IMG/VR virus record: IMGVR_UViG_3300045135_002615
Location: 1 to 64,000 of that record
DNA: 64,000 nt
Strand: one strand, 5' to 3'
Below the pieces are notes generated by a model, which saw only the letters and a list, made by a program, of their open reading frames with translations, ran no database searches and had not been told where the DNA came from. The translations under genes were made by a program, and so were the position numbers. This document shows positions 3,058 through 58,215 of the stretch, piece after piece. Position 1 is the first letter of the stretch. Each line of letters begins with the position of its first letter.

Positions 3058-3981
3058 ATGATCAACTTTCTAAGTAACCCTTCTGACTTCCGTACTCAGA
3101 GCTACCGCGTAGCTTCTGTCTCCCCTTCTCATCTAGCTAAGATTGCTTCTATGCAATACAGCACCCGCCTCCCCCTTCAGAAGAAGGTCAAGTGGGCGAC
3201 TAATGTCATGGCGACCCCTAAGATCGCAGGCATTCGTGACATTGGGAAGAAGGTCTCCGATGCCTTCTTCTCCTTCTTTCAAACACTCTTTGTTAAGACA
3301 CCTGTAATTAAGCAGATCTTGGCTGTCTATCGTAAGGTTGCTGAGAAGAGGCTCAGAGAGATCCTCCATAAATCATGGAAGGTGGCTTTTGACGACCTTT
3401 CTAATTTTGTGACTGTTCCGAAGTCACGCATTAACTTCTTGAAGACATATGGGAAGAACTACTTCTACGATGTCTACCTAGAGACTTTCCAATCAGGTAG
3501 TATAGGTGCGGCTAAGGCATTATTACCTAACCTACAGCAAAGAGCAAAAGATATCGCTGAGAGAGAGATCGGCTTCCGACTAATCTCCTCTCTCGCAAGA
3601 GATGCTCTCCGTTCAATCAACCCCTTCTCCCACATGAAACAGATGAACAATGTATTTGAGTACCTTTATGATAGTTTCAGAACACCTGAACCAGGTGAGA
3701 AAAAGAAGTTAAAAGAGCCCCCTATCGGCTTCATCCTCCCAATGTTCCTTAAGTCAGTCCTTCTTTACATGGCATGGGGTTTTCTATCTACTGCTACCCT
3801 CTCTCCTGTTTTGTTACTTGCCTTTGCAAACTACTCCCCCAAGGAGATATACGCAGCACAGGAGAAGATGGGTCTTGTCAAGTACTTAACTAGGACACTC
3901 GGCAAGGGTTGGAATTGGCTGTCCTTCGGTGACCCTAATAAGGGTCAAGACCCTTCTACACTATGGGCTGAGGGCTTCTAA
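3058..3981 (+). CDS. hypothetical protein, paralog 3 of tandem trio
   Basis: ATG at 3058 (MINFLSNP, matches paralog starts; ORF open from 3046); RVASVSP, EREIGFRLISSL, RSINP blocks. Confidence 0.85.
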   Translation: MINFLSNPSDFRTQSYRVASVSPSHLAKIASMQYSTRLPLQKKVKWATNVMATPKIAGIRDIGKKVSDAFFSFFQTLFVKTPVIKQILAVYRKVAEKRLREILHKSWKVAFDDLSNFVTVPKSRINFLKTYGKNYFYDVYLETFQSGSIGAAKALLPNLQQRAKDIAEREIGFRLISSLARDALRSINPFSHMKQMNNVFEYLYDSFRTPEPGEKKKLKEPPIGFILPMFLKSVLLYMAWGFLSTATLSPVLLLAFANYSPKEIYAAQEKMGLVKYLTRTLGKGWNWLSFGDPNKGQDPSTLWAEGF

Positions 3982-4081
3982 GACCCCTCTTTTGACTCTA
4001 AGTATCTCAGTTTTCAAAGAAAAAACCGCCCCCCTCTGATGCGTTGATATAAATACAACACAACACAAAGGGAAATAAACA

Positions 4082-4885
4082 ATGAGCGGAACTAAGTACA
4101 ACTGGACATCTATTGAGAATGCGATTAAGAATGCGATTAAGCGAGAGGGGACGGACCCGACAGGGAGGGTGTTCATTTATGCAGACCTCCGTGGATTAGA
4201 CCTTAGTGGTCTTGACCTCAGCGGACTTGATCTCACCAAAGCTGACCTCAGAAAGGCTAAGCTCACAGGTGCGAACCTTGAGGGGACGGACCTCAGATGG
4301 GCTAACCTCAAGGGGGCGGATCTGAGCGGGGCTATCCTCACAGGGGCATCTCTCAGCGGGGTTAACCTCAGTGGGTTTAACCTCAGTGGGTTTAACCTAA
4401 CAGGTGCTAGTCTCTATAAAGCTAACCTCAAGGGTGCGAACCTGAAGGGTGCTGACCTCAGCGGGGCTTTCCTCGCGTGGGCTGAGCTCAAGGGGGCTGA
4501 TCTCACCAACGCTACCCTCACAGGTGCAGACCTAACTAAGGCGAAACTCAGAGGTCAAGACCTGAGTGGTCTTGACCTCAGTGGGGCTAACCTCAGATGG
4601 GCTAACATCAGAAAGGCTACTCTCATTGGTACTGACCTAACAGGTGCTATCCTTGAGGGGGCGTGGCTCACAGGGTCTAACTTCACGGGTGCTGACCTAA
4701 CAGGGGCTAACCTATCTAAGCTCAAAAGCTCATTCCTCAAAGAGACTAACTTCACGGGTGCGAACCTCAGTGGAGCGAACCTTACCAAATCTGACTTCAG
4801 CGGAGCTGACCTTACTGACGCTGACCTTACAGGTGCTGAGTTTAACAAGGTTGAAGAACCACTTCTTCTCTCTGATCTCTTATAA
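4082..4885 (+). CDS. pentapeptide repeat protein
   Basis: long run of A(D/N)L(S/T)G-type pentapeptides after a short N-terminal domain. Confidence 0.92.
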   Translation: MSGTKYNWTSIENAIKNAIKREGTDPTGRVFIYADLRGLDLSGLDLSGLDLTKADLRKAKLTGANLEGTDLRWANLKGADLSGAILTGASLSGVNLSGFNLSGFNLTGASLYKANLKGANLKGADLSGAFLAWAELKGADLTNATLTGADLTKAKLRGQDLSGLDLSGANLRWANIRKATLIGTDLTGAILEGAWLTGSNFTGADLTGANLSKLKSSFLKETNFTGANLSGANLTKSDFSGADLTDADLTGAEFNKVEEPLLLSDLL

Positions 4886-4905
4886 TAATCACTTTGATCC
4901 TTTAA

Positions 4906-4954
4906 AGGGTGGGGGTGTATCTTTTCATGGATACACCCCCCACCTTTTTTTTTT
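4906..4954 (+). terminator. intrinsic terminator
   Basis: GGTGGGGGTGTATC / GATACACCCCCCACC stem followed by T-run. Confidence 0.75.
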
Positions 4955-5515: not shown

Positions 5516-6019
5516 ATGGCTGTTGCCTTTAAACGTAATCAGATACTCACAAGAGGTGACCTCGACATCTTCCTCACTAACTCATCAGGGAATGTCGCTA
5601 ACGCCTCTAGTATCTCATACGCTCTATACTTCGTTGACCCTGGTCCACCCGAAACAGATGTACTCATCGGTGACCCCCAACGTATCCCCGAAAACCCATC
5701 TATCGGTGAATACTACGCATCCGTTCGTATCCCTACTACCGCTACCTATGGTCGCTATCGTATCCGATGGACCCTTAAAGAGTTTGTTAACTCAAACGCT
5801 CAGACCGTTGTCCAAGAGTTTGAAGTCGTCCCTGAGAACTCCGTGCTCGGTCCTGAGATGTCCAACGGCGAAAAACAAATGGTCTATAAGCTCCGTATGC
5901 TCCTAAGAGACCAATGCCTCGGTGGTGAGGAACAAATCACCATTGACGCTGATGGTGAAAAGATTACTCTCTCCATAGAGGAGCTATATGACATCATAGG
6001 GGAGACAGGCAATGCTTGA
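5516..6019 (+). CDS. fractured gene part 1: N-extein (133 aa, probable head-tail adaptor/neck protein) + split intein 1 N-fragment
   Basis: extein ends ...LRMLLRDQ, followed by intein block-A-like CLGGEEQITI and stop after 34 aa. Confidence 0.85.
   Translation: MAVAFKRNQILTRGDLDIFLTNSSGNVANASSISYALYFVDPGPPETDVLIGDPQRIPENPSIGEYYASVRIPTTATYGRYRIRWTLKEFVNSNAQTVVQEFEVVPENSVLGPEMSNGEKQMVYKLRMLLRDQCLGGEEQITIDADGEKITLSIEELYDIIGETGNA
5915..6016 (+). mobile_element. split intein 1, short N-fragment (34 aa)
   Basis: starts with Cys (CLGGEEQITIDADGEKITLSIEELYDII), acidic; parallels IntN2 (SVRGDT...KVKLTIEELHEII). Confidence 0.8.
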
Positions 6020-6113
6020 AGGACTGCTAACTAAGTTTGAACTCACAAGAGAGCAACTAAATAAAAAAGGTCGAGTCTCTAAAGAGATTGTAGAAAAGGA
6101 GCTTGGTCTATGA
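6012..6113 (+). CDS. 33-aa ORF inside the intein-1 split, possibly a remnant of a free-standing endonuclease gene
   Basis: MLEGLLTKFELTREQLNKKGRVSKEIVEKELGL*; overlaps stop of part 1 and ATGA-overlaps part 2; too short for the ORF track. Confidence 0.5.
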   Translation: MLEGLLTKFELTREQLNKKGRVSKEIVEKELGL

Positions 6114-6496
6114 CATCTCAAGAGAAAACACAGAAGATCAAAGATGCCTTCCAAAAAGGAAAACTCACCATCAAATCTATGGACTCTCAAGGTGAGTTCT
6201 CTTGGAAGCAAATCTCTAAAGCACACAAGAACCCGACACCAGTTGAACCCATATATAAAATCACCACTGAGCAAGGGAAGCAACTCATAGTCACAGGAGG
6301 GCATCGTGTGTATATGAGCCCTAACCTCTGTGTCCCCGCTGAAGATCTCTCTGTCGGTCTTAGCCTACAGACAACACAAGGCTTAACTAAGGTCTCCCAT
6401 ATCGAGGTCATACAAAACAGACCCTTTATGTTCGACCTGACCGTAGAGGATAACCATAACCTTGTACTAGAAGGTTCTGATGTGGTCGTACACAAC
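6110..6496 (+). mobile_element. split intein 1, long C-fragment (129 aa)
   Basis: TxxH, DLTV..NHN, terminal His-Asn followed by Cys+1; basic N-terminus; no endonuclease domain. Confidence 0.88.
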
Positions 6497-6880
6497 TGCC
6501 CTGATAAGTTTTACCATTTCAGACCTCCCGAGCATGAATCCAACATCGGATCATACAATCAAGTCTTCGGTCAAGTATGGGAAGATGCCGAGTTCCTTGA
6601 GTACCTTGAGAGAGCACTCGATTGGTGGAACCTCCAACCTCCCGAAACTGAGAACCTCTCAAATATGGATCAACTCATCTCTCAAAAGCCCGCATGGAGA
6701 ACTCCCATCCTTCAAGGTGCTATTCAGTTCGCTGCTATGGCTCTACAAGCAAATTGGATCGTGGACGAATTCTCGGTTAGGGGGGATACCGACTTAGAGG
6801 TATTACTCCCTAGTGGGGAGAAGGTTAAGCTCACGATTGAAGAACTTCATGAGATTATAAAAGAGGAGGGTGAGGAGTAA
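6110..6880 (+). CDS. fractured gene part 2: split intein 1 C-fragment + middle extein (92 aa) + split intein 2 N-fragment
   Basis: TGGH (block B), FMFDLTVEDNHNL (block F), VVHN/C (block G) at residues 129/130; C-terminal SVRGDT...IEELHEII intein N-fragment. Confidence 0.9.
   Translation: MTSQEKTQKIKDAFQKGKLTIKSMDSQGEFSWKQISKAHKNPTPVEPIYKITTEQGKQLIVTGGHRVYMSPNLCVPAEDLSVGLSLQTTQGLTKVSHIEVIQNRPFMFDLTVEDNHNLVLEGSDVVVHNCPDKFYHFRPPEHESNIGSYNQVFGQVWEDAEFLEYLERALDWWNLQPPETENLSNMDQLISQKPAWRTPILQGAIQFAAMALQANWIVDEFSVRGDTDLEVLLPSGEKVKLTIEELHEIIKEEGEE
6773..6877 (+). mobile_element. split intein 2, short N-fragment (35 aa, Ser1)
   Basis: SVRGDTDLEVLLPSGEKVKLTIEELHEII resembles block A (C/S-x-x-G-D-T) and aligns with IntN1. 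Confidence 0.78.
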
Positions 6881-7827
6881 TGTTGAAGCAAAGACACCTC
6901 ATAATGAAATACGGGTTTAACCAAAGGCACTTAAAGAGTTTGATTGAGGAGGGTATCCTTAAGACCTTGCCCACAGAGGGCAAACGTAAAGTACCCCTCA
7001 TAGACCCTGAAAGTTTTGAAAGTCTTTTAGAAGGGGTACACTACCTCTCATGTAAGGAGTGTGGGTCGAGGGTTGCTCAAGTGTCACCAATGCACTTGAA
7101 ATCTTGTTCAGGCTTGTCTTTAGACTCCTACTTTAAGAAGCACACGGATGCTCCATACATGTGTGAGTTCACAAAGAAGAACAAGAAGAAGTCAGAGGAG
7201 CAAAAGATAAGACAGTCCGAAACCCTCAAGGCAAGGTTCAAGACCCCTGAAGGCGAGATCACCCGAAGGCAGATTAGTGAAGCAAGTATAAAAATGCAAC
7301 AGAGTGAGGTGGGAGATCGCATCAAAGATGCTCTTAGAGAAAATAACAAAAACCCTATCTCTCTCGCTAAAAAGAGCAAAAAGTCTAAAGCAATGTGGGC
7401 TACCAAGTCCCATCAAGAAAAGATAAAAAAGTGGCACAAGGATAACCGAGATCAAGTCCTTGAAAGCTGTAAGTACGCAAGAGAACACATCTCCCACACT
7501 TACACAAAACCGCACCATACTTTGAAACAGATGCTTGTTTCAGAGGGTATCGAGACTTTGACTGAACATAGCGTTTCTCACTACCATATAGATGAAGCCA
7601 TACCTTCTCTCAAAATCGCTATAGAGGTTGATGGGTGTTATTGGCATGGGTGCGATGCCTGTGGGTTTACCCCCACAAAAAGAATCGCAGGGAATGATAA
7701 AGCCAAAAACACAAACCTATCTAAGCTAGGGTGGGCTGTGCTTAGGTTAAAAGAACACGAGGTCTATGGTGACCCTGACTCTTGTCTTGAAAGAATAAAA
7801 AACCTAATCCAGCAAAGGAGCGTATGA
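6880..7827 (+). CDS. free-standing Vsr/DUF559-like (PD-(D/E)xK) endonuclease, probable homing endonuclease
   Basis: C-terminal YHIDEAIPSLKIAIEVDGCYWHGC...DKAKN..L..LGWAVLRL.E; N-terminal CKECG..HL..C zinc motif and basic NUMOD3-like segments; lies between the halves of split intein 2. Confidence 0.85.
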   Translation: MLKQRHLIMKYGFNQRHLKSLIEEGILKTLPTEGKRKVPLIDPESFESLLEGVHYLSCKECGSRVAQVSPMHLKSCSGLSLDSYFKKHTDAPYMCEFTKKNKKKSEEQKIRQSETLKARFKTPEGEITRRQISEASIKMQQSEVGDRIKDALRENNKNPISLAKKSKKSKAMWATKSHQEKIKKWHKDNRDQVLESCKYAREHISHTYTKPHHTLKQMLVSEGIETLTEHSVSHYHIDEAIPSLKIAIEVDGCYWHGCDACGFTPTKRIAGNDKAKNTNLSKLGWAVLRLKEHEVYGDPDSCLERIKNLIQQRSV

Positions 7828-8231
7828 TGGACAACTCGACCAAACAAGCAATCAAGCAGGCTTTCTTACAAGGGGAGCTTAAAGTTCTCTCCGTAGATAA
7901 CGACACCAACCAAGTAGACTACCAAGTCATCTCGGATGTGATGAAGCATCATACTCCACATAAGAGAATACTTCGAGTAGAACTCGATAATGGTCAGTTC
8001 GTCATCGCTACCCAAGACCACTCCCTATTCACTATCGAAGAGGGTAAAATCAAAGCCATTGAAACAGATCAGTTTTCTGTTGGAGATACTCTCGCTATCG
8101 TTGAAGACGGTCAAGTCAAAGGGTGTCTTATCACTAACATCTCTCAAGAGGATGACTGCGAACACACTTATGACCTCTGTGTGCCTAGGAACGAAAACTT
8201 TGTGCTTGCTAACGGAATACTAGCCCACAAC
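7824..8231 (+). mobile_element. split intein 2, long C-fragment (136 aa)
   Basis: TxDH, YDL.V..NENF, terminal His-Asn followed by Ser+1; N-terminus (KQAIKQAFLQGEL) resembles IntC1 (QKIKDAFQKGKL). Confidence 0.88.
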
Positions 8232-8453
8232 TCGTATTCGATAGGTGGTATCAGCTTAGACTTAGACCGCTCCTCTAAGTATGAGTCTCTAAAGTCCACC
8301 GCTGAGTCCATGTGGTCTCAATCCGTTGAAGCAAAAGCACGCACTACCAAGTTTATGCGAGGTCTAAGGCAACCTAAATATGGTGTCGGTATTCGCAGTA
8401 GTTTTGGTCCTGCGGTTGGGCGAGGCGTTCTTTCACCGAGAAACTTTCTTTGA
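7824..8453 (+). CDS. fractured gene part 3: split intein 2 C-fragment + C-extein (73 aa)
   Basis: ATQDHSL (block B), TYDLCVPRNENFVLANGILAHN/S (blocks F, G); extein begins SYSIGGISLDL. Confidence 0.9.
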   Translation: MMDNSTKQAIKQAFLQGELKVLSVDNDTNQVDYQVISDVMKHHTPHKRILRVELDNGQFVIATQDHSLFTIEEGKIKAIETDQFSVGDTLAIVEDGQVKGCLITNISQEDDCEHTYDLCVPRNENFVLANGILAHNSYSIGGISLDLDRSSKYESLKSTAESMWSQSVEAKARTTKFMRGLRQPKYGVGIRSSFGPAVGRGVLSPRNFL

Positions 8454-8553: not shown

Positions 8554-8724
8554 ATGTCAACTCATTGCCCTGCGTGTAAGAAGCAGGTGAGCCCAAAGGG
8601 GCTGCCAGGTCATATAAAAAAGTGCTCTCTATGGGACACCAAGATTGGGGTCCCATCATCAGAGTTCAACTTTGATGAATACTTCCAAAGGGGTTTGTAT
8701 GAGCCTCAAGGGTGCTACTTTTGA
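8554..8724 (+). CDS. small C2HC zinc-finger ORF (56 aa), possibly a truncated gene
   Basis: MSTHCPACKKQVSPKGLPGHIKKCSLW...; good RBS; below ORF-track cut-off; last codons overlap the next gene in another frame. Confidence 0.6.
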   Translation: MSTHCPACKKQVSPKGLPGHIKKCSLWDTKIGVPSSEFNFDEYFQRGLYEPQGCYF

Positions 8725-9634
8725 GGGTTGTCTTCTTGATGAGGTATTCTTCCACGAGTGTGACTCCTCATCACTTGAGGGTGTGGCCTTTGAGGGTTGT
8801 ACTTTGGGTGGTTACTTTGAGAAGTTCGAGGAGGCTACTTTCGTAGACTGCGAGGATGAGGACTACGAGGAAGACGAGGATGAGGTGGAAGTTGAGGACT
8901 TTCACGTTGACCTCTCGGAGTATGACATCTCGGAGTATGACATCTCGGAGATTGACCTCATCAAATTCATCGCTCAGCTCAAGGCGGAGCATGCCCCCGA
9001 AGCCCTACAGCTCACGGGGGCTGACCTCAGCGGTGCTGACCTCAGCGGAGCTGACCTCAGCGAGGTGGAGTTCTTCTCTGAGATTGACCTCACAGGGGCT
9101 AACCTCAGCGGTGCGAACCTCACTGATGCGTTCTTCGATGGGGTGAACCTCCGCGAGGCTGACCTCAGCGGTGCAAACCTCACGGGGGCGATCATCACGC
9201 CCGCCTCGCTCAAGCTCGCTAACCTCACAGGGGCTAACCTCAGCGGTGCTTGTCTCGGAGGCGACCTCTCAGGATCTAACCTCAGCGGTGCGACCTTGAC
9301 GGGGGCAGAGCTGATCGGTGCAACCCTGAAGGGTGCTGACCTCAGCGGTGCTGACCTGACGGGTGCGAACCTGAGCGGTGCGGACCTGACGGGTGCGGAC
9401 CTCTCAGGGGCTAAGCTCACAGGTGCTAAGCTCACTGAGGCTAACCTTGAGGGTGCTAACCTTGAGGGTGCTGACCTCACGGGGACTGACCTCACCCTCA
9501 CCAAGCTCGCTTATGGGGACTTGAGAGGGGTGACCCTCAAGGGTGCAGTCTTCGCCAACACCGACCTCACCAACGCCGACCTTGATGGTGTGAAACTCAC
9601 CAAGACCCAAATCAAGGCGGCGACCAAATCATAA
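8699..9634 (+). CDS. pentapeptide repeat protein with acidic N-terminal insert
   Basis: extensive ADLSG/ANLTG repeats; N-terminal part duplicates the C-terminus of the 9873 gene; frame open from 8645, ATG 8699 chosen. Confidence 0.9.
   Translation: MSLKGATFEGCLLDEVFFHECDSSSLEGVAFEGCTLGGYFEKFEEATFVDCEDEDYEEDEDEVEVEDFHVDLSEYDISEYDISEIDLIKFIAQLKAEHAPEALQLTGADLSGADLSGADLSEVEFFSEIDLTGANLSGANLTDAFFDGVNLREADLSGANLTGAIITPASLKLANLTGANLSGACLGGDLSGSNLSGATLTGAELIGATLKGADLSGADLTGANLSGADLTGADLSGAKLTGAKLTEANLEGANLEGADLTGTDLTLTKLAYGDLRGVTLKGAVFANTDLTNADLDGVKLTKTQIKAATKS
8769..8856 (+). repeat. 88-nt direct repeat, copy 1 (copy 2 at 10351-10438)
   Basis: CATCACTTGAGGGTGT..CCTTTGAGGGTTGT...GACTGCGAGGA, 85/88 identical by eye. 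Confidence 0.9.
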
Positions 9635-9749: not shown

Positions 9750-9800
9750 AAAAGAGCCCGACTGACCTATCAAATGGTTGGTCGGGCTCTTTTTTTTTTT
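9750..9800 (+). terminator. bidirectional intrinsic terminator
   Basis: AAAAGAGCCCGACTGACC-TATCAAAT-GGTTGGTCGGGCTCTTTT + T-run. Confidence 0.85.
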
Positions 9801-9872: not shown

Positions 9873-10496
9873 ATGTCAGACAAGAAGATTATAGATTTTG
9901 ATGAGTATGAGTGGAACTACGGCGACGATACCGTAAACTACGAAGGTCATGCTTTTTGGTTAAAGTTTGATGGTGACCTGACAGGTCACACCCTCACAGG
10001 GGCAACCATTGAGGGCACCCTCTTCAAGGGTGCGGATCTCAGGGGGGCAACCATTAAGGTAGAGGCTCTCACAGAGAGCCTCTTTGTGGATTGCAACCTT
10101 GAGGGTGCAACCCTCTCGGCAACTAATCGAGGCGTGAACCGCGTAGTCTGGACGGGCTGCAACCTTCGTGGTGCAACCATCAAGAACACCTGGCTTGATG
10201 GGGTATGCTTAAGGAACTGCGACCTTCGTGATGTAACATTCGAGGGCTGCTTATTTGATGTATATAATACTGTCCTTCTTCAAGATTGCAACCTGCAAGG
10301 TGCAACCTTTAAGGATTGCTCCTTGAGCTCTGATTTCGTTCTTCATGGGACATCACTTGAGGGTGTAACCTTTGAGGGTTGTACTTTGGGTGGTTACTTT
10401 GAGAAGTTCGAGGAGGCTACTTTCGTGGACTGCGAGGACAGGACTACGAGGACTACGAGGACTACGAGGATGACGAGGACTAAGAACCTCACCTAG
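9873..10496 (+). CDS. pentapeptide repeat protein (divergent), 3' end probably frameshifted
   Basis: ADLRG/CNLEG/ATFKD repeats; AAGGA RBS; tail reads RTTRTT where the alternative frame reads EDYEDYEDDED like the paralog. Confidence 0.85.
   Translation: MSDKKIIDFDEYEWNYGDDTVNYEGHAFWLKFDGDLTGHTLTGATIEGTLFKGADLRGATIKVEALTESLFVDCNLEGATLSATNRGVNRVVWTGCNLRGATIKNTWLDGVCLRNCDLRDVTFEGCLFDVYNTVLLQDCNLQGATFKDCSLSSDFVLHGTSLEGVTFEGCTLGGYFEKFEEATFVDCEDRTTRTTRTTRMTRTKNLT
10351..10438 (+). repeat. 88-nt direct repeat, copy 2
   Basis: see 8769-8856. Confidence 0.9.
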
Positions 10497-10511: not shown

Positions 10512-10559
10512 AAAAGAGCCCGACTGACCATTTGATAGGTCAGTCGGGCTCTTTTTTTT
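10512..10559. terminator. bidirectional terminator between convergent genes; inverted copy of the 9750 hairpin
   Basis: AAAAGAGCCCGACTGACC-ATTTGATA-GGTCAGTCGGGCTCTTTT; the loop is the reverse complement of the 9750 loop. Confidence 0.85.
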
Positions 10560-10579: not shown

Positions 10580-11038
10580 TCAAGTAAGGTCTAGACCTGC
10601 CTCTAACCATGAGAGGTCAAGTGTCCATTGATGCTGAGACCTCTCCTCCCACTTACTAAAGACACTCTCGATGTAGAGCTCTAACTGTAAAGGGTGCTTG
10701 AACTCGTTGAGTACAGCTATCTTGTTAAGCACTTGCTCCTGAACCTCAGGTGACTCTACAGAGAGTGTCCTCCCTAGATGCTTTGCCTTATGGCAGGTGG
10801 GGCATAAAGAGATCAACCCCTTGAGGGTCTGTGTCTTTGTCCCATCATCATAATGCCATATCTCATGACACTCTACGGGGTGTGTGGGACCTTTTTCGGA
10901 GCATATCTCGCATCGGTATTGAGCGTTTCGATATGACTGCCTCCGTAATGTGTCCCATCTCTCTTTAGAGAGGTTGGCTTCAGTGCGTAGGTTGTTGCCC
11001 CATGACGTTGAAGGGACAAGTTCAATAGTGAGTTTCAT
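10580..11038 (-). CDS. HNH endonuclease
   Basis: CEIC...ECHEIW...LISLCPTCHKAKH zinc/HNH-type pattern. Confidence 0.8.
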   Translation of the reverse strand: MKLTIELVPSTSWGNNLRTEANLSKERWDTLRRQSYRNAQYRCEICSEKGPTHPVECHEIWHYDDGTKTQTLKGLISLCPTCHKAKHLGRTLSVESPEVQEQVLNKIAVLNEFKHPLQLELYIESVFSKWEERSQHQWTLDLSWLEAGLDLT

Positions 11039-11141: not shown

Positions 11142-12248
11142 ATGAGACTAACAAAGATAGATACATGGGTAGACGAGCCAATCAATACAGACCATCCCTT
11201 ACTGATCTCTAGTGTTGATTGGGCTCACACAGAGCTTGTAGATCGTGTGAATATCCCACTTGGCTCTAATGTCCAAGTGGGGTGCTCTTCTTCAGAGGAG
11301 TTGGACATTGAGGTGTGGCTAGAAGAAGCCGTTACCGAGGTCACCCGACAGACCTCAGTAGAAGGTATGGGTACTAGGACTTATCTTGAGCAAGAGACAC
11401 AGATCAAAGTGTTGGGTACAACGATCAGATCAATTTCCCCTCGCCCTATTAGGGTCAAGAACCTTGATGATGACAAGCAGTACCTCCTAGTGACTTCAGA
11501 TCACTTTAAGATCATAGAGATAGAGGGGGCATCCCTCACACTTGAGGAACAAGTAAAGCTGTACAGGGTGACACACGGACTGAGTAAGGATTTGCAAGGT
11601 ATTAGCTTGTCTAACTGCAAGGTCCCCTTTGACCTTAGCGGGTGCGACTTGAGCGGTAGTTCATTTGATCAAGTGGACTTCTTAGGTGATCTAAGGGGAG
11701 CTAATCTATCAGGGACACACCTCACATATTGTGATTTAAAAGGGTTGAACATTGAAGGGGCTGACTTCAGCAACAGCACCCTTAATAGCGTTGACTTCTC
11801 CTGCTCTAGCTTAAAGGGTTCAACCTTTTTAGACGCGGATCTTGATAGCCCCCTCTTTGTAACGTGTTCACTTGAGGGGGTGGACTTCACAAAAGCCAGT
11901 TTTAATGGTGGTGACTTTACTTGTGCTCTTTGTGAGGGGGTGGACTTTAGTGGTCTTGAGTATAGTTATGACGAGAGCTTGTCTGATTGTCTCAACGGCT
12001 ATCTTAATGACCCTAGGCTCTTGTTTAGTTGGGCGGATTTGAGGCGGGCTAAGTTTGATGGGTTGTCTTTGAACCATGCTCAGTTTAATGGTGCTACCTT
12101 GACGGGGGCAACATTTAAGGATTGTGATCTTAGTTCATCAGAAGACGACTACAGAGATGGTCGTTATGAATACTATTCAGAGGGCACGAACTTCAAGGGT
12201 GCAGAGCTAGGTCTAAAATTAAGGGTCACTTTAAGGGCTTATTTATAA
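11142..12248 (+). CDS. pentapeptide repeat protein with unique N-terminal domain
   Basis: C-terminal CDLSG/ANLSG/ADFSN/VDFTK repeats. Confidence 0.88.
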   Translation: MRLTKIDTWVDEPINTDHPLLISSVDWAHTELVDRVNIPLGSNVQVGCSSSEELDIEVWLEEAVTEVTRQTSVEGMGTRTYLEQETQIKVLGTTIRSISPRPIRVKNLDDDKQYLLVTSDHFKIIEIEGASLTLEEQVKLYRVTHGLSKDLQGISLSNCKVPFDLSGCDLSGSSFDQVDFLGDLRGANLSGTHLTYCDLKGLNIEGADFSNSTLNSVDFSCSSLKGSTFLDADLDSPLFVTCSLEGVDFTKASFNGGDFTCALCEGVDFSGLEYSYDESLSDCLNGYLNDPRLLFSWADLRRAKFDGLSLNHAQFNGATLTGATFKDCDLSSSEDDYRDGRYEYYSEGTNFKGAELGLKLRVTLRAYL

Positions 12249-18231: not shown

Positions 18232-18888
18232 ATGTTTAATCTCTTTAACTACAGCAAGAGGGATCTCACCGCCGCCATTGCGGGGGTCAAAGCACTCACG
18301 GGTGCTAAGCTTCGTAATGCCCCACTAGGTGCGGTTGATCTCTCTTATGCAGATCTCTCTTATGCAGACCTAAGAGGAGCTGATCTCACAGGTGCGAACC
18401 TAACAGGTGCTAAGCTCACAATGGCTAGGCTCAAAGGAGCTGACCTCACGGGTGCTGACCTCACAGGGACTACTTTGAGTATGGTGAGAGCCCCTCAAGC
18501 GAACTTCACGGGGGCGTATGCTCCTTTGAGTGATCCTGCTCTCTTTAATGGTGCGGAGCTAACAGGAGCTATCTTTGAGAGGGCTCTTTTGGACTCATCA
18601 CTCTTTAAGAGTGCCATTCTAAAGGATGTAAACTTTACTGAAGCCTCTCTCATCGAGGCGAACTTCAAGAAGGCAGAGTGTAAGGGGACAGACTTTGTAT
18701 ACGCCAACATGGAGCGTGTGAAGTTTGACTCGGCAGAGCTGACAGATGTGAGCTTCATCTCTGCGAACTTGAGTTATGCCGACTTTGAGGATGCCACCTT
18801 GACAGAGGTGGACTTCAGAGAGGCTACGACAACTAGAATTCGATTATTAGACGCGGTTATGTCCCGCATTGAGACAGACGAGGCGTAA
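18232..18888 (+). CDS. pentapeptide repeat protein
   Basis: ADLSY/ADLRG/ANLTG/VNFTE/ADFED repeats. Confidence 0.9.
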   Translation: MFNLFNYSKRDLTAAIAGVKALTGAKLRNAPLGAVDLSYADLSYADLRGADLTGANLTGAKLTMARLKGADLTGADLTGTTLSMVRAPQANFTGAYAPLSDPALFNGAELTGAIFERALLDSSLFKSAILKDVNFTEASLIEANFKKAECKGTDFVYANMERVKFDSAELTDVSFISANLSYADFEDATLTEVDFREATTTRIRLLDAVMSRIETDEA

Positions 18889-20639: not shown

Positions 20640-20712
20640 GCGACTATAGCTCAGTTGGTAGAGCATCGGTCTTACACACCGATGGTCACAGGTTCAAGTC
20701 CTGTTGGTCGCA
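20640..20712 (+). tRNA. tRNA-Val(UAC)
   Basis: GCGACTA/TGGTCGC acceptor; TCGGT-CTTACAC-ACCGA anticodon arm; ACAGG-TTCAAGT-CCTGT. Confidence 0.95.
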
Positions 20713-20743
20713 CTAGCCCTGCCCGTTAAAGGTGTTTCTCCTC

Positions 20744-20777
20744 CTCGTTGTTCCGTGAGGAGGGCTAAAACGGAACC
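20744..20777 (+). repeat. conserved pre-tRNA spacer hairpin, copy 1
   Basis: CTCGTTGTTCCGTGAGGAGGGCTAAAACGGAACC; 32/34 identical to 21376-21409. Confidence 0.85.
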
Positions 20778-20782
20778 TCTAT

Positions 20783-20856
20783 GCCTACTTAGCTCAGTTG
20801 GTTAGAGCAACGGACTGTTAATCCGTAGGTCCAAGGTTCAAGTCCTTGAGTGGGCG
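20783..20856 (+). tRNA. tRNA-Asn(GUU)
   Basis: GCCTACT/AGTGGGC; ACGGA-CTGTTAA-TCCGT; CAAGG-TTCAAGT-CCTTG. Confidence 0.95.
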
Positions 20857-20944
20857 GTCCCTTCCCCTTTGGTGCAGAGGGGTGTCAACACTTTATCATG
20901 TAGTGTGGGGAAGAACATGAGACGCCTGTAAAAACAGCCTTGTA

Positions 20945-20969
20945 CTCCGTGAGGCGGGCATCAACGGAG
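20945..20969 (+). repeat. conserved spacer hairpin, divergent copy 3
   Basis: CTCCGT-GAGGCGGGCATCA-ACGGAG: same stem and GAGG.GGGC loop with compensatory stem change. Confidence 0.6.
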
Positions 20970-20975
20970 GTTTAT

Positions 20976-21025
20976 GTGGTCAGCCATATGGGGCTGCTTA
21001 ACAGGTTCGATTCCTGTAGATCGCA
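20976..21025 (+). ncRNA. tRNA-like minigene 2 (acceptor-like stem + one hairpin + perfect T-arm)
   Basis: GTGGTC/GATCGC stem, CAGCC-ATATGG-GGCTG hairpin, ACAGG-TTCGATT-CCTGT; 3' trailer TCGCACTAGCC same as after tRNA-Val. Confidence 0.5.
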
Positions 21026-21103
21026 CTAGCCGCAGAAAGTTTGGTAAAAGCCAAGAGATTAAGCTCCTCAAAAACTTTAACCCCTTATTTGAAGCGGCTT
21101 TCA

Positions 21104-21185
21104 CGGGATGTGGCGGAATTGGTAGACGCACTGGATTTAGGTTCCAGCGTTGTAAGACGTGGGGGTTCGACTCCCCCCATCCCGA
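21104..21185 (+). tRNA. tRNA-Leu(UAG)
   Basis: CGGGATG/CATCCCG; CTGGA-TTTAGGT-TCCAG; long variable arm; GGGGG-TTCGACT-CCCCC. Confidence 0.95.
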
Positions 21186-21189
21186 CTAA

Positions 21190-21221
21190 GGGCAGGTTTT
21201 TTTAACCTGCCCGTTTTTTTT
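21190..21221 (+). terminator. intrinsic terminator
   Basis: GGGCAGGTT/AACCTGCCC stem + T8. Confidence 0.75.
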
Positions 21222-21270
21222 ATGTTTGCCTTGTATAATGCTCTGTGAGCTGATATAGGTTAGCTCGTTT

Positions 21271-21343
21271 GCTGGTGTAGCTCAATTGGTAGAGCACCTG
21301 TCTTGTAAACAGGGGGTTGGGGGTTCAAGTCCCTCCTCCAGCA
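21271..21343 (+). tRNA. tRNA-Thr(UGU)
   Basis: GCTGGTG/CTCCAGC (one T-T mismatch); CCTGT-CTTGTAA-ACAGG; TTCAAGT T-loop. Confidence 0.92.
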
Positions 21344-21375
21344 TTAGCCTCTTCCCTTTAAGGGTGATTCTCAAC

Positions 21376-21409
21376 CTCGTTGTTCCGTGAGGTGGGCTAG
21401 AACGGAACC
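21376..21409 (+). repeat. conserved pre-tRNA spacer hairpin, copy 2
   Basis: CTCGTTGTTCCGTGAGGTGGGCTAGAACGGAACC. Confidence 0.85.
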
Positions 21410-21411
21410 AT

Positions 21412-21484
21412 GCAAGAATAACTCAATTGGTAGAGTATCTGCCTTCCAAGCAGAATGTTGCGGGTTCGAGTCCCGTTTCTTGCT
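21412..21484 (+). tRNA. tRNA-Gly(UCC)
   Basis: GCAAGAA/TTCTTGC; TCTGC-CTTCCAA-GCAGA; GCGGG-TTCGAGT-CCCGT. Confidence 0.95.
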
Positions 21485-21651
21485 CTCTCTCCTTTTGGAG
21501 GGGATAAGGGAAGCCCTTTCTCTGTGGGGTCAATCACAGAGAGTTTTGTTCTAGAGGGGTCTAAAGCCTTGACAGAACACTGACTACACTAAATAACATC
21601 CTAACTCACGATTTGAGCGTTGTCCGTTGGGCATATAGTGTAGTCATTTAT

Positions 21652-21734
21652 GGGTAGGTGGCCGAGTGGTTAAAGGCATCAGGCTGTAAACCTGACCTCG
21701 ATAGAGTACGGGGGTTCAAATCCCTCCCTGCCCA
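21652..21734 (+). tRNA. tRNA-Tyr(GUA)
   Basis: GGGTAGG/CCTGCCC; TCAGG-CTGTAAA-CCTGA; long variable arm; TTCAAAT T-loop. Confidence 0.95.
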
Positions 21735-21737
21735 TAT

Positions 21738-26959: not shown

Positions 26960-27424
26960 ATGTGGTATGAAGTTAAGGGTCGAGAACGTATCGCTCAGGT
27001 AGGGTGCTCTTATGATGGGGACATGGTTTGGAACCCGCTCACTCATAAAAGCACCCCTATCAATGAAGCCCTCGTCTCCGCATTAGGAGAGTTAGGCTTT
27101 GTGCATGTGTCTAGCACAGATAAGATGGAGCTAGTGGACATTGAGGCTTTGGATAAAGCGGGGGTGACCTTTGTTGACCCCTCCTCTTTCATTCGTGAGG
27201 AGTTCTCAATCATCCGCAAAGGGGCAAAGGAAACCATAGTGGTTTACCCTGCTCCACGAGAGGATAGAATATTGTATGTGGTGTGTATGGGTGAGGAGCA
27301 ACTGCTCTTTATCTCACATACGTTCACTTCATTCTTAAATGACTTTGTTGTAGGTTTTCGCCAATGGTGGTCACGCAAACACAGCGGCACCCAAGTTTTG
27401 ACCTCTAGGGGGACAGAAGGTTGA
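26960..27424 (+). CDS. hypothetical protein, paralog C of the WTEIV.G family
   Basis: MWYEVKG...NEALVSALGELGF; GGAG RBS. Confidence 0.75.
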   Translation: MWYEVKGRERIAQVGCSYDGDMVWNPLTHKSTPINEALVSALGELGFVHVSSTDKMELVDIEALDKAGVTFVDPSSFIREEFSIIRKGAKETIVVYPAPREDRILYVVCMGEEQLLFISHTFTSFLNDFVVGFRQWWSRKHSGTQVLTSRGTEG

Positions 27425-29653
27425 GAAGGGTACGCCAAGTATAGGGTCTATGTCAGAGCCGCAGACAATAGCACCTGAAGCTACTCCTGGGCTCAAGAGT
27501 GAGATGCTAGGGGAAGCAATACGGGTAGCTGTTCGTGCGGAGGTCTGTATGACAGCAGAAGACATAGAGATCAAAGCCCCACCGACCATGTTGACCGTAC
27601 CTGTAGGAGCGATGAACTTAAATCCGTCCATTGAGTGAGTGGCTACATTGGTACCTACAGTGTTTGTACTTTGACCTACACCTATGGTGGTTGTCTCAGT
27701 ACCTGTAGCGATGGTCTTTGTGTTTGTAGTAGCCGTCAGGTAGATCTCTTCACGCCCACCATAGGCATTAGTGTAAGAGTCGCTCGGACCTCCTGGGTGA
27801 CCTGTTACAGGGTTGGCTGCAATCGTCACTTTCTTAACGGGTCCATGTAAGGCATTAAAGGAAGGTGGTCCTGCTATGACTTCATCGTAAGAACCTGTAG
27901 AGGTCACCTTAACCCTATCACCCGCAAGGTTAAGCCCACTACCTGTAGACAGATCAAGCAGACTATTAGAGTTAAGGCGTATTTCACCTGCCTCTGAGAA
28001 GTCTACTATAGGTGCTTTAAAAGACAATGAGGTGCCCGATTGGAGAGCTACTCTTTTAGTTCCATTAATGAAGATAGAGGCTTCTCTACCATCCCCTTCT
28101 AGAGGTCCGCCTTCTCTTGAACCTTCCGCTTTGAGCGTGATGGTGTTTGACGAGATGTAGCTCTCGTTGGTAGTAAAGAGATTGATACTATCCGCCCCAA
28201 GTGTCAGTTCAGCTTCAGATGAGAGTTGAACTCCACCGAGGGCAGATACTCTAACGGCATCTGAAGCGGGGCTCGACACATGAGCTTTAAACTTACCTCC
28301 CTTAGTCCATGAGGCGAAGGCATCTCTCACGTTAGAGAGAACTGGAGACACCTTCAGTAGCGTAGCTGCATGGTCTTCAACCCTTGTCTCATCATCTGCG
28401 GCGACTATCTCTTGTTCTTGAGGTACAAGAGGTAGTCCATATAGGGGCTTACCTTGGTTTGAGAACGGATCATTACCTACAGGTGTTCCTAGTACCCATT
28501 CAATGAAGGGTGTGTTAGAATCGCCACCTCTCTCATTAGGTAGTTTGTCTGCATCGAAGCCATCTGTTTGTTCGGTGACAGGTAATGTCCCATCCGTTGT
28601 ATGTGTGACTTCTATACGGTATTCAGTAAAGGCATTGCCCGTATCTGTAGCGTTATCGCCTTCAGTCCCCAACCTGAAGATAGACTTACCACCATAGGTG
28701 AGCCCCTCTAGTGTCTCATCAAAGAACTCCTCTCCTACAAGCCCTGCGTCATACAAGAACCGATAGGGATCCATAGGAGGCTCTACCTCTCCCTCAAAGG
28801 TTCGTGACCCCGTGATGTCTCCATCTTCATTAATAGTGGGGTTGTTTCTAACGAAGAGGGGGTGTGGTGAGAGTAGACCGGGTGTCTCCTCTCTGACTTC
28901 GTATTCATCGTCTAGAGGGTAGAGTGGTCTACCTTGTGTATCTAGTTGTATTGAGCTATCCCACTTGATGCCGTCAGAGAACATCTCTTTAGGTAGTGAC
29001 CGTGCATCACGTTGGACCATACCTGCGTATACTCTTGCCCCCGACATGGCATGGAACTGCTGTAGTGACCTCAATACAATGGCTTGGTCTTGATCTCGGA
29101 GTAGTATCTCGTTCGATCTACGATTGGAGAGAAGGACACTCTCATCAAGCACAAGGTCAGAACCTTGTGATGAGCTTGCACCTACGTTACCTGGTTGATA
29201 GTGTCTTAGTTTGTTCCTTACTCTAGAGTAATGGCTCTCAATCTCTTGGCGTCTCTTATTGGAGTCAAATCCTTCACCTGGTTTGAAGGATTGAGTGGGC
29301 AACCAATCATGTCCCAAGTAAGTAGCTTGAGGCCACCATGCAAGGATAGCGGGGGTCTTCCCATTAGCAGGACCTTTGGAGTCCCCGACAAACCAACCTA
29401 CGACACATTTATCTCCGATCTCAGGTATGGCACCCATGAAGTGTCTACTACCAATAGAGGGTAAGAGTATCTCCACACCACTCAAGGGGTATGAGAGGTC
29501 GCCTTCTCCGTGTATGATCTGAAGAGTACACTTCAGCTCCGCCGCATGAATCTCTAAGACTTTAGCGATGCTCAGACCTAGTGATGCCCACCCTGTAGAG
29601 GGGTCACCATCTTTACGGGCTAAGTCTTCGATCATATTCTGTGATGTCTTCAT
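27371..29653 (-). CDS. baseplate central spike protein (gp5/gpV-like)
   Basis: N-terminal OB-fold-like IPEIGDKCVVGW, beta-helix-like C-terminus, position after hub in tail module. Confidence 0.65.
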   Translation of the reverse strand: MKTSQNMIEDLARKDGDPSTGWASLGLSIAKVLEIHAAELKCTLQIIHGEGDLSYPLSGVEILLPSIGSRHFMGAIPEIGDKCVVGWFVGDSKGPANGKTPAILAWWPQATYLGHDWLPTQSFKPGEGFDSNKRRQEIESHYSRVRNKLRHYQPGNVGASSSQGSDLVLDESVLLSNRRSNEILLRDQDQAIVLRSLQQFHAMSGARVYAGMVQRDARSLPKEMFSDGIKWDSSIQLDTQGRPLYPLDDEYEVREETPGLLSPHPLFVRNNPTINEDGDITGSRTFEGEVEPPMDPYRFLYDAGLVGEEFFDETLEGLTYGGKSIFRLGTEGDNATDTGNAFTEYRIEVTHTTDGTLPVTEQTDGFDADKLPNERGGDSNTPFIEWVLGTPVGNDPFSNQGKPLYGLPLVPQEQEIVAADDETRVEDHAATLLKVSPVLSNVRDAFASWTKGGKFKAHVSSPASDAVRVSALGGVQLSSEAELTLGADSINLFTTNESYISSNTITLKAEGSREGGPLEGDGREASIFINGTKRVALQSGTSLSFKAPIVDFSEAGEIRLNSNSLLDLSTGSGLNLAGDRVKVTSTGSYDEVIAGPPSFNALHGPVKKVTIAANPVTGHPGGPSDSYTNAYGGREEIYLTATTNTKTIATGTETTTIGVGQSTNTVGTNVATHSMDGFKFIAPTGTVNMVGGALISMSSAVIQTSARTATRIASPSISLLSPGVASGAIVCGSDIDPILGVPFSTFCPPRGQNLGAAVFA

Positions 29654-32600
29654 GAGTTCTCACCCCTTTTGGTCTTAGCCTTAATGAACTGAGTCAGGTC
29701 ATCGGTAGCTTCTACGATTTGATCTACTTGTTGACCCCACTCAGCAATTTCCTTCTCAAGAAGTTTACCGACTCGATTCGCTCGATTAGCTCCCGCGATG
29801 GGAGAGCCCCTCAACGCCTTTTGATGCTCTTCCCATGTTTGCTTGTTCTCTCTAGACTTTCTAAGAGACCTAGCGATCAAGGGGTTCTCTATCTCTACAA
29901 TGGTGTTCTCAAGATCAAGTGCAGAGTAAAGGAGATCAGCTTCAGAAGTATTACCCTTACAGGAGCACATCGCTTCTGATCGTGTGGGTGGTCTGATCTC
30001 AGATAGTGCTTTAGGGGTATTCGTAATGACCTGTTCATCTGACCTCGACATCATTAAGTTGATAATCCCCTCATGTCTTAGACCAGGGTCGAACTGAACT
30101 GACTGATCATCTATGTTCAAACCATAAGCTGCATATATCCTAGAGACTGCCTCTTTATCCGTAGACATGATCTCATCCATCCTAGACCTTAACGTGTCCC
30201 TCAACTCCTCATTGAACGCATCTATACTCTCATAAGAGGAGAGGCTCTCTCTTAGATCAGCGATCTGTCTTTGAGTTAGAATACCTAGCGGGTCTTGTCT
30301 TAAAAGGATGTCAAATAGAGTCTTACGGGCGGGCTTCAAACCTCTCCCGTATTGATACGCCCCAAACACCTCATATCCTTGATCATCAGACACAGGGAAC
30401 ACAGGGGCGAACATCTTTCCTTTTTTGAACCTACGGCGAACTTCCTTGCGAGATCTACCCTTGTAAAACCCGCCCTTGATAGAGGGTACAAATGCCTTTT
30501 GCACATCGGATAGAATTTTAATGATTGCTTGAGTTCTCGCTTGAGCTGTGCCTGTCCATTTTTGATATAGCTCAGGGTAGTACCCTTTTAGCTTTGCCTC
30601 CAATGCGAAGGCTGTCTCAGTGGCGAGGACGGCAGCAACTTGAGCTTTGTTATTGTTCCCGAAGGGGAGGTCTTTAAGTCTAGTGTTTGGGTCTAAGGCT
30701 GACCCGTATATCAACCTAGATGGGAACTGCCTTGAGTTAGCATAGTCAAATCTAAACAGAGCCTCATTGAGAGTGTTCACTGTGGTAGTGGGCTTGTACT
30801 TCTTTATGATGGTTGCCTTGATGACATTCACAATGTTCTGTCGTAGTGCTCTACCAAACCCGCTCTCTGTTTCCCATTTAGATGGGTCGAAGGTGAGTCC
30901 TACTTCTACGGTATCTTCGGTGATGGTGTAGTTGGTAGAGAACGTGAGTGTCTTAATGTCTTTCGTAGGGACTACTTCAAAGCCTCTTGTAAACAGAGTC
31001 CTTGCAAAGATACCTCGAACAACAGAACCCCGACGCTGTTCAAACTCAACCACATCACCACCGAGCTCAGGGTCAGGATAGACAATATTAAGATCACTCA
31101 CGGTAGCTGAACCTGCGGGTTCAAAATAAAGTTGAGCCATATCATCTTCACCTTCAGGTGGCTTTACTGAAGGCACAGGAGGTCCCTGATGTTCGGGAGA
31201 GGGATGAGAGGATGAGAAGTATCTATAGTAGCCAGGTAGGTGAGGTGCAAAACTACTCTTCTTGTTCTCAAGCAACCTCAAGATGTTTGAGGTCTTCAAT
31301 GTTCCGTCATCAACCTCTGTCTTTCGCTGTTCACGGATAGCGAGGATCAAGTCGTAGATGGTGAAAGTAGTAGAGCCTTGAGGAGACCTTAATTGCTCTA
31401 TTGCTTCTTCAAGTGTGCGTTGAGCTGTCTCACGGAGTTGCTTAGCCTCATCTATTCGAGACCCTGAAGCATATTTAGACCTACCTGCTAGTTTAGATGC
31501 TCTCTCATCGGCTTTGACCTTCTCATAGGTAGCCTTCTCTAGAGCGGACTCACCGAGGATAACATTACGTTGAGATATGGTTCTCCTTGAGAGTTTAGAA
31601 TATGAGTATCTACCTCTACTGTCTTTTCTTAAATACTGAGTACCTTCCTTCTCAAGACCGAGTACACCCTCTTGATCACCAATCTTGATCTTCCAAGGAC
31701 CATTAAAGAGATCACCGCCTTCATCTGTTTGGATGATGCCGTACTTCTTACCTTCCATGAGGAGCATATTGCGATATGCTTCACGGACTTCGCTCCCGAT
31801 TCTGCCCATAGACTGATAGTCGAGGCTATACGTTAAGAAGCTAGGGTCCATCTTATAGGGGTCAAGAGCCATCACCACATTGGGGAAGCCCTGTAGTTTC
31901 TTTGTTTGGAAGGTATCCCCATTAACATCATTAGCGGTAGCTCTACGATAGAGATACTTCTTAGGCATTGAAGGGTCACCTAAGTCCACCGCACGGGCAG
32001 GGTCTTCATTATACTTGATGTCGGGATCTCCAGGTGGGAAGAACTTTTTCCGCTGACATGTGAGCGATAGAGTGGTGGTGCAATCACCTCCAAAGCTGAA
32101 GGAGTGATCAACTTGCTCTACATAGTAGAAGCAGTCATTTTCCTCAACATAGATGGGATAGCCTGGTTTGATCTCAGGTCTTAGAGGGATTGTGATAGAG
32201 CATGTCTCTGTTGATTTATTAGCTGAATCGAGGGCTACGACCGCAGCGTAAAAAGCCTTCCTTGCGGTGTTGTAGTATGTCGTATCAAAGGACATCTCTT
32301 TCCACCCGTACTTGGCAACCAACTTATAGTCCACATACATGCCCTTGATACCCCATTCACCCTCAACAGATGAGACTTTAATATTCCTGAAGGGTCCACC
32401 ACTACATACGACATAGGTGTACTCAGGTTCAGCGTGTTCAAAGCTGATATCTAGCGTATGTCTACGCTCAATCCTGTAGACTCTATCACCGCTGGTGTTC
32501 ATGTTGTACATGGGGGGTTTGAATACGAGGTTGCCATCAAAGTCTTGATAGAACTCATACCCGACCCTCTCCGCCACTTTATCAGCTAGAGACTTCTTGG

Positions 32601-33744: not shown

Positions 33745-33749
33745 TGAGA

Positions 33750-34688: not shown

Positions 34689-34690
34689 GT

Positions 34691-38526: not shown

Positions 38527-38527
38527 A

Positions 38528-40115: not shown

Positions 40116-40166
40116 GTTAATCCTGTCCGTTTAGTTGAAGGGTACGGCTACCCTTTTATACCGAGC

Positions 40167-41027: not shown

Positions 41028-41100
41028 GTTGTCCTCCTTAGAGAGCCAATAGTCCATTTATGAGCAACTGATAAAGAAACTATTAACGAGGACTTAGACG

Positions 41101-51762: not shown

Positions 51763-51781
51763 GTTGACCTGCCTTATGCTG

Positions 51782-58212: not shown

Positions 58213-58215
58213 GGA

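Follow-up and report, generated by a model that had tools for sequence, protein, structure and literature searches.

A jumbo-phage gene broken twice, with a protein probably rejoined by two atypically split inteins

The jumbo-phage contig IMGVR_UViG_3300045135_002615 from IMG/VR is 296,642 bp long, and its first 64 kb, the whole stretch analysed here and called the window below, carry at 5516-8453 a tight cluster of open reading frames (ORFs) that encode one protein in pieces. ORF1, ORF2 and ORF3 each hold a part of this host protein (an extein), and at each of the two breaks, site 1 and site 2, the upstream piece ends in a short N-terminal intein fragment (IntN) and the downstream piece begins with a long C-terminal intein fragment (IntC). 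We hold with good confidence that the cluster is one gene for a conserved protein of 298 amino acids (aa), broken twice, whose products are likely joined after translation by two split inteins. In order along the window, its features are:

ORF1, 5516-6019, forward strand: 167 aa, extein 1 plus IntN1; predicted mass 18.6 kDa.
Extein 1, 5516-5914, forward strand: 133 aa; makes up the N-terminal, beta-sandwich portion of the host protein and shares 98% identity with residues 1-134 of the uninterrupted homologue P0002.
IntN1, 5915-6019, forward strand: 34 aa and a stop codon; begins CLGG, with Cys1 at 5915-5917; holds blocks A and N2.
Mini-ORF, 6012-6113, forward strand: 33 codons; in-frame deletion remnant of the TnsA-like homing endonuclease gene of site 1.
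ORF2, 6110-6880, forward strand: 256 aa, IntC1 plus extein 2 plus IntN2; predicted mass 29.2 kDa.
IntC1, 6110-6496, forward strand: 129 aa; block B TGGH at residues 62-65; C-terminus VVVHN, with Asn at 6494-6496.
Extein 2, 6497-6772, forward strand: 92 aa; begins CPDKF, with Cys+1 at 6497-6499.
IntN2, 6773-6880, forward strand: 35 aa and the stop codon TAA; begins SVRGDT, with Ser1 at 6773-6775.
Free-standing homing endonuclease gene, 6880-7827, forward strand: 315 aa, Vsr-like, of the I-Bth0305I type.
ORF3, 7824-8453, forward strand: 209 aa, IntC2 plus extein 3; predicted mass 23.3 kDa.
IntC2, 7824-8231, forward strand: 136 aa; block B TQDH at residues 63-66; C-terminus ILAHN, with Asn at 8229-8231.
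Extein 3, 8232-8453, forward strand: 73 aa and a stop codon; begins SYSIGG, with Ser+1 at 8232-8234; matches residues 218-298 of P0002.

A first-pass annotation of the window had described this extein-intein anatomy for ORF1, ORF2 and ORF3, and the ORF list and translations reproduce its coordinates and piece sizes exactly; the 315-aa endonuclease ORF and the 33-codon remnant were not listed there. The three exteins sum to 298 aa, with a computed mass of 33.8 kDa. The gap of 90 nucleotides (nt) between ORF1 and ORF2 contains the mini-ORF, whose first 8 nt lie within the end of ORF1, stop codon included, and whose own end overlaps the start of ORF2 in the sequence ATGA, and the endonuclease ORF overlaps the ORF2 stop (TAATG) at its start and the ORF3 start (ATGA) at its stop. 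This unbroken chain of overlapping stops and starts, from ORF1 through the mini-ORF, ORF2 and the endonuclease gene to ORF3, suggests that translation of all five is coupled; ribosome-binding sites are present and all ORFs of the locus are intact. A scan for promoters and terminators within the locus gave nothing exceeding shuffled expectation, and its sole notable feature was a strong hairpin upstream of the locus, at 4911-4940. The G+C content is 47.8% in the exteins and 43-45% in the intein and endonuclease DNA. The initial impression that the exteins are C-rich did not survive counting (third-position C 0.32 versus 0.26, Fisher p = 0.10, not significant).

Does this protein exist elsewhere in one piece? 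A homologue search with extein 2 alone as the query, the pieces being kept apart, returned 200 homologues at E <= 1e-3, the majority of them uninterrupted and 295-300 aa long. The closest uninterrupted ones, P0002 and P0003, are 298 aa long and 96-97% identical, align colinearly with exteins 1, 2 and 3, and run continuously over both junctions: ...LLRDQ is followed by Ser or Asn and then PDRYYHF, and ...WIVDEF by Ser or Asp and then YSIGG. A spliced product of 298 aa with junctions at these two places had been predicted beforehand, on the understanding that it would be given up if no contiguous homologue crossed them, and contiguous homologues span both. A tblastn search of P0002 against the 64-kb window matched the three pieces only.

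The intein parts carry complete sets of the catalytic residues that mark class-1 inteins. Intein 1 is of the Cys1/Cys+1 kind, with TGGH in block B and a C-terminal VVVHN followed by Cys, and intein 2 is of the Ser1/Ser+1 kind, with TQDH and a C-terminal ILAHN followed by Ser. Intein 2 is thus without a catalytic cysteine, and because IntC2 contains three other, non-catalytic cysteines, and so is not cysteine-free, it is cysteine-independent in its catalytic residues only. The Pfam profile Intein_splicing (PF14890, gathering cut-off 35.8 bits) matches ORF2 with 43.6 bits (E 3.4e-11) and ORF3 with 58.6 bits (E 8.5e-16), and the NCBIfam profiles intein_Cterm (TIGR01443) and intein_Nterm (TIGR01445) score above cut-off in both. 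A profile containing IntC1 matched 21 chains in the PDB, of which 17, including all the top-ranked ones, are inteins or HINT domains; the remaining four are weak matches to ADP-ribosyltransferase (E about 0.02). The engineered consensus CatC (6dsl_B, an atypical fragment) is among the matches, with E 0.045.

Where the inteins are broken can be read from relatives in which they are whole. Intein 1 is contiguous in P0001, P0022 and L015, intein 2 in L010, P0145, P0148 and P0165, and both are contiguous in P0153. Such contiguous forms match the N-terminal splicing-region profile from its position 1 (in P0001 the match starts at Cys1 of the intein), whereas IntC1 covers only positions 15-82 of TIGR01445 and IntC2 positions 32-83, which places block A and helix alpha-1 on the IntN pieces. 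For both inteins, IntN plus IntC is colinear with the contiguous inteins of relatives, with no part missing, and the break falls after IEELYDII in intein 1 and after IEELHEII in intein 2; in the PDB profile search, residue 18 of IntC1 corresponds to roughly residue 30 in DnaE inteins. Judged from these alignments, the split in both inteins follows helix alpha-1 and lies between blocks N2 and B, at the S2 position described for AceL-TerL and GOS-TerL (PMC13014065). The resulting fragments, 34 and 129 aa for intein 1 and 35 and 136 aa for intein 2, may be set beside the published range for atypically split inteins, in which IntN has about 15-37 aa and IntC more than 100 (PMC13014065). The first-pass annotation had proposed two split inteins with a short IntN, one of them starting with Ser, and had allowed that the fragments might fail to make whole inteins; the fragment sizes, the invariant Ser1 described next and the curated profiles above cut-off agree with that proposal, and the halves are colinear with natural, contiguous inteins.

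The catalytic residues are conserved well beyond the closest relatives. All 23 homologues of IntC2, which reach down to 39% identity, have a C-terminal AHN followed by Ser or Thr (Thr stands at +1 of intein 2 in two relatives); the TxxH of block B is kept in 21 and lacking in two, and 20 are full-length with the identical split point, the other three being shorter. Ser1 is invariant in all 20-odd N-terminal pieces homologous to IntN2, diverged ones included, and Cys1 of intein 1 is likewise invariant in relatives. These patterns bear on a simpler account, in which the pieces associate non-covalently without any ligation, the intein halves serving as docking domains only. There is precedent for this in the split NrdA of phage Aeh1, a functional protein that a homing endonuclease has broken up and whose parts are reported to stay together through endonuclease-derived tails, with no splicing (PMC3045599), and both insertion sites are modelled in low-confidence, probably flexible segments of the host protein. 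Docking alone, however, needs no catalytic residues, and their conservation, in Cys1 or Ser1, the terminal His-Asn and the +1 nucleophile, therefore counts against it. The +1 position speaks in the same direction: in most empty alleles it is a non-nucleophilic Asn at site 1 and Asp at site 2 (a few, such as P0002, have Ser), whereas in the intein-bearing alleles of the extein 2 homologue set it is always Cys at site 1 and Ser at site 2. We consider purely non-covalent assembly improbable.

Selection has acted on all parts of the locus. Ratios of nonsynonymous to synonymous substitution rates (dN/dS), calculated by the Nei-Gojobori method against four related loci, are 0.04-0.10 for IntN1, 0.09-0.10 for IntC1, 0.00-0.09 for IntN2 and 0.06-0.10 for IntC2, similar to the 0.00-0.10 of the exteins, and 0.09-0.13 for the endonuclease, so that no segment exceeds 0.13. 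By this measure both inteins, at 0.02-0.10 overall, evolve under strong purifying selection. Could the locus nonetheless be a decaying, non-functional gene, or an artefact of assembly or sequencing? One endonuclease gene is visibly decayed (6012-6113), and the search for a replacement copy covered 64 kb of the contig; yet dN/dS is at most 0.13 throughout, no ORF is broken, and the ribosome-binding sites and the coupling of stops to starts are preserved. As for an artefact, the architecture recurs in JGI, ENA and Logan assemblies made independently from different samples. We have rejected the pseudogene and artefact readings on these three grounds, and regard the chance that either holds as very slight.

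Each break is associated with a gene, or the remains of a gene, for a homing endonuclease. At site 2, the product of 6880-7827 scores above the Pfam cut-offs for Vsr (29.7 bits; cut-off 27), DUF559 (32.3; 20.6) and MTES_1575 (38.5; 38.2), matches homing-endonuclease families in PHROG and shows a visible EVDGxYWHG motif; its best PDB match, weak at E 0.018, is the catalytic domain of I-Bth0305I (3r3p_A). On these profile matches, gap 2 is filled by an intact homing endonuclease gene of the Vsr-like (EDxHD) kind. At site 1, relatives carry a gene for a TnsA-like PD-(D/E)xK endonuclease of 289-347 aa (L003, L006, L010, L012 and L052, the last being GenBank LR745208.1), and the 289-aa protein of L006 scores above the cut-off for the Pfam family Tn7_TnsA-like_N. 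The 33-aa product of the mini-ORF in the window is identical to residues 1-33 of the L006 endonuclease at 25 of 33 positions (76%), and its last six residues, EKELGL, are the C-terminus of the same protein. Because it thus matches both the start and the C-terminal end of the endonuclease, the mini-ORF is best explained as an in-frame deletion remnant. Compared with the contiguous intein 1 of L004, intein 1 of the window has a 114-nt insert.

To see how these arrangements are distributed, we mapped nine segments of the locus onto 40 IMG/VR loci and eight other loci. Twenty-nine of the 40 are intein-free; five have an intein at site 2 only, split and with the Vsr-like gene; three have one at site 1 only, either split with the TnsA-like gene or, in L015, contiguous; and three are occupied at both sites. 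Across related jumbo-phage contigs, both sites are found empty, with a contiguous intein, with a split intein plus endonuclease gene, and with a split intein plus decayed endonuclease gene. Complete three-piece loci are those of the window, of L003, where both endonuclease ORFs are present and that of site 1 is interrupted by the contig end, and of the diverged L050/L051 lineage, which comprises 15 contigs with both endonuclease ORFs and a series of ORFs of 170, 299, 274, 144 and 209 aa. Doubly split middle pieces occur elsewhere in P0004, P0013, P0021, P0103, P0117 and P0158, the last three diverged. By sequence comparison, then, at least three further lineages share the three-piece layout, and it has been recovered from JGI, ENA and Logan assemblies alike.

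Other relatives show mixed or intermediate conditions. In L004, intein 1 is contiguous and site 2 is split, with no more than a 23-codon remnant of the endonuclease gene left there. In L010 (IMGVR_UViG_3300020178_000002, 312 kb; 3501-4892), the contiguous intein 2 reads ...HEIIKEE-R-MMDNLTKQ..., and because it retains the Met-Met start of IntC2 it looks as if it had been re-fused after loss of the endonuclease gene. L052, an unannotated 485-kb uncultured huge phage, has the site-1 fractured arrangement at 351707-358318, in pieces of 165 aa (extein 1 plus IntN1), 347 aa (the TnsA-like endonuclease) and 297 aa (IntC1 plus the remainder of the protein). Synonymous divergence (dS) from L003, L006 and L008 is 0.5-0.8 in the intein and endonuclease DNA, below the values in the exteins, which range from 1.3 to saturated, consistent with horizontal spread of the cassettes by homing.

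The host protein is an intein hot-spot in other respects as well. A distant homologue, P0176, has an extra contiguous mini-intein near its C-terminus, where GPW is followed by CLYKD...VVHN and then by TGG, and in P0144, P0158 and P0177 the first intein lies six residues further downstream, its terminal HN being followed by SFRPP (site 1b in P0144). The C-terminal pieces P0007, P0008 and P0025 run about 20-24 residues beyond the customary end ...SPRNFL (VFPLF...), as if the regular stop codon were absent from those genomes.

How would three polypeptides become one protein? We propose that two cassettes, each a class-1 mini-intein with a homing endonuclease, broke the gene, which would now be expressed as three polypeptides, the overlapping stop and start codons favouring co-translation of all pieces. 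IntN1 would dock into IntC1 and IntN2 into IntC2, giving two complete HINT domains. In each of these, Cys1 or Ser1 would undergo an acyl shift, Cys+1 or Ser+1 would take over the chain by trans-esterification, the terminal Asn would cyclise, and another acyl shift would close the standard four-step sequence. The middle piece would in this way be ligated on both sides, with the junctions ...LLRDQ-CPDKF... and ...VDEF-SYSIGG.... The endonuclease genes would be the engines of mobility, the Vsr-like one intact at site 2 and the TnsA-like one decayed at site 1. Ligation itself, like the fidelity of the two pairings, we infer from the residues and alignments described above.

Canonical split inteins bring their halves together by a charge-driven 'capture'. 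In pair 1, pairing may likewise be aided by charge, with a net -8 on IntN1 and +5 on the first 40 residues of IntC1. Pair 2 would presumably form by hydrophobic docking, as in atypical inteins of the TerL type (PMC11766414). Several points weigh against the proposal of two-sided ligation. IntN2 has a net charge of -7 and IntC2 is itself acidic (-11), so that charge capture is not obviously applicable to pair 2. IntN1 and IntN2 are similar, with 12 of 21 positions identical and both strongly acidic, which makes mis-pairing conceivable, and IntN2 could conceivably pair with IntC1, within one ORF2 molecule or between two. Finally, the stretch known to lack a further, intact copy of the gene comprises just 64 kb of the 296.6-kb contig.

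The resemblance of the IntN pieces leads to an alternative in which one junction alone splices well, or the two pairs cross-react, yielding a two-piece product, cyclised or concatenated ORF2, or cleavage products. The two IntN pieces carry about -7 to -8 each, a basic N-terminal region is present in IntC1 only, and close split-intein homologues do cross-react, as GOS-TerL does with AceL-TerL (PMC11766414) and CL with CLm (PMC12707363). IntC1 and IntC2, however, share just 27% identity, and several diverged lineages have kept the double split, with purifying selection acting on it, which argues that the pairs cooperate without a costly side reaction. We therefore think such partial or promiscuous splicing unlikely, and continue to favour faithful ligation at both junctions, by two pairs that would each be specific.

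The role of the host protein is less clear. The first-pass annotation had suggested a head-tail adaptor. In favour of this, five more distant homologues match phrog_17327, 'head-tail connector', weakly and in the same region (best E 1.4e-4), and gp319 of Tunturi_5, 26.5% identical, is annotated as a connector in GenBank and lies near tail genes. An AlphaFold2 model of the uninterrupted homologue P0002, made from a 72-sequence alignment with a predicted local distance difference test (pLDDT) score of 69, shows a beta-sandwich at the N-terminus, over residues 1-105, and four to five helices after it, and the intein sites, at 133/134 and 225/226, lie at invariant sequence motifs where modelling confidence is low. 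A Foldseek search of this model against the PDB returned generic beta-sandwich matches only, all with a template modelling (TM) score of at most 0.25, and no fold of a solved adaptor; a profile search of PDB sequences with the host protein gave no match. The exteins of the window match no family in Pfam, NCBIfam or PHROG, and P0002 is likewise without an extein-related match. Matches in BFVD are uncharacterised phage proteins, gp165 and gp160 of phage G, and domains of the BppU-N or minor-tail kind; the literature yielded nothing of use on gp165 or on Tunturi_5. It is plausible that the protein acts in the virion or as a connector; given the lack of a convincing PDB or family match, the specific assignment as an adaptor stays weak.

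Several further features lie around the locus. Directly downstream of ORF3, at 8554-8724 on the forward strand, a 56-aa Cys-rich ORF shares 58% identity over 45 aa with the N-terminus of a 477-aa ORF at the equivalent position in L052 (3744-5177; LR745208.1), whose C-terminus has a Vsr-like 'DWWHG' motif; from this similarity, the short ORF looks like the truncated remnant of another free-standing endonuclease-like gene. On the reverse strand, 10580-11038 encodes a 152-aa HNH endonuclease (Pfam HNH, 21.8 bits; cut-off 21.4), possibly a free-standing mobile nuclease. Genes for pentapeptide-repeat proteins surround the locus on the forward strand (4082-4885, 8645-9634, 9873-10496, 11142-12248 and 18232-18888), as they do in L003, L006 and L008. 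An 88-nt direct repeat, 97% identical between its copies at 8769-8856 and 10351-10438, links two of these genes, and a 48-nt hairpin with a T-run occurs twice, at 9750-9797 and 10512-10559. Six tRNA genes (Val-TAC, Asn-GTT, Leu-TAG, Thr-TGT, Gly-TCC and Tyr-GTA) lie at 20640-21735 on the forward strand. Very large ORFs, the longest of 1879 aa, follow one another in long runs at 27371-41057 and 46603-63988 on the reverse strand and show almost no family matches; one of them, 29650-33744, has weak PHROG matches to baseplate-hub and tail proteins, so a virion module may lie there.

The locus and its relatives may be of use beyond the phage itself. Orthogonal split inteins are scarce for the ligation of three segments, those with a short IntN and those that are cysteine-independent especially so, and here a naturally co-evolved pair of inteins comes with dozens of diverged variants for screening. 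The family also amounts to a natural experiment on how atypical splits originate, in which a free-standing endonuclease gene would enter the alpha-1 linker of a mini-intein and not the canonical site of the endonuclease domain, and in which contiguous, split and decayed states can be compared at each of the two sites. If the host protein is a component of the virion or a connector, assembly of the jumbo-phage particle would need two post-translational ligations, and fractured genes would reach beyond enzymes of DNA metabolism.

The closest known counterparts are the 'fractured genes' of marine phages (gp41-1, NrdJ-1 and IMPDH-1 among others), in which an N-terminal part with IntN, a free-standing endonuclease gene on the same strand and IntC with the C-terminal part follow one another (PMC2677866). 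Site 2 of the window has exactly this layout, and a Vsr-like endonuclease family was reported in half of the fractured-gene loci by Dassa et al. in 2009 (PMC2677866). Those genes, which encode DNA-metabolism enzymes, are each 'fractured in two', and the break lies at the canonical position, leaving an IntN about 100 aa long, whereas the gene in the window is fractured twice, both times at the atypical S2 site, with a TnsA-like endonuclease at site 1 and a non-enzymatic, possibly structural host protein. In their short IntN and long IntC, their split after alpha-1 and their phage origin, its inteins resemble AceL-TerL and GOS-TerL (IntN of 25 and 37 aa, IntC of 104 and 115 aa; PMC11766414, PMC13014065), which differ in being single splits in the large subunit of terminase, and whose sequence relatedness to the inteins of the window is marginal. 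GOS-TerL likewise begins with Ser1, yet is Ser1/Cys+1, as opposed to the Ser1/Ser+1 of intein 2. The PolB16 OarG intein is similar to intein 2 in its natural split, nucleophiles of the Ser/Thr type and short IntN, and is the sole natural cysteine-less atypical intein named in a 2026 account (PMC13014065); it is split at S1, with an IntN of 15 aa, and intein 2 at S2, with one of 35 aa.

Fractured genes, Vsr-like endonucleases, S2-split inteins and split inteins with Ser1 are thus already known. An incomplete full-text search of the literature found no description of a natural twice-fractured or three-piece intein gene, no natural Ser1/Ser+1 intein split at S2, and neither a TnsA-like endonuclease in the fractured-gene role nor a non-enzymatic host protein. 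The initial remark that the arrangement was not recognised as described is in keeping with this outcome, in that tandem trans-splicing turned up as an engineered scheme only (PMC12707363). That scheme is similar in using three polypeptides and two split-intein pairs, with a middle segment that runs from IntC to IntN, and differs in being man-made from unrelated inteins, whereas the arrangement in the window is natural and its inteins are distant paralogues, both atypically split. The window probably represents the first natural case of tandem trans-splicing. We lean somewhat, if by no great distance, towards the fuller claim that it is the first by orthogonal S2 inteins, one Cys-dependent and the other Ser1/Ser+1, in a family that keeps all stages of the intein and homing-endonuclease cycle at the atypical site, including a form that looks re-fused.

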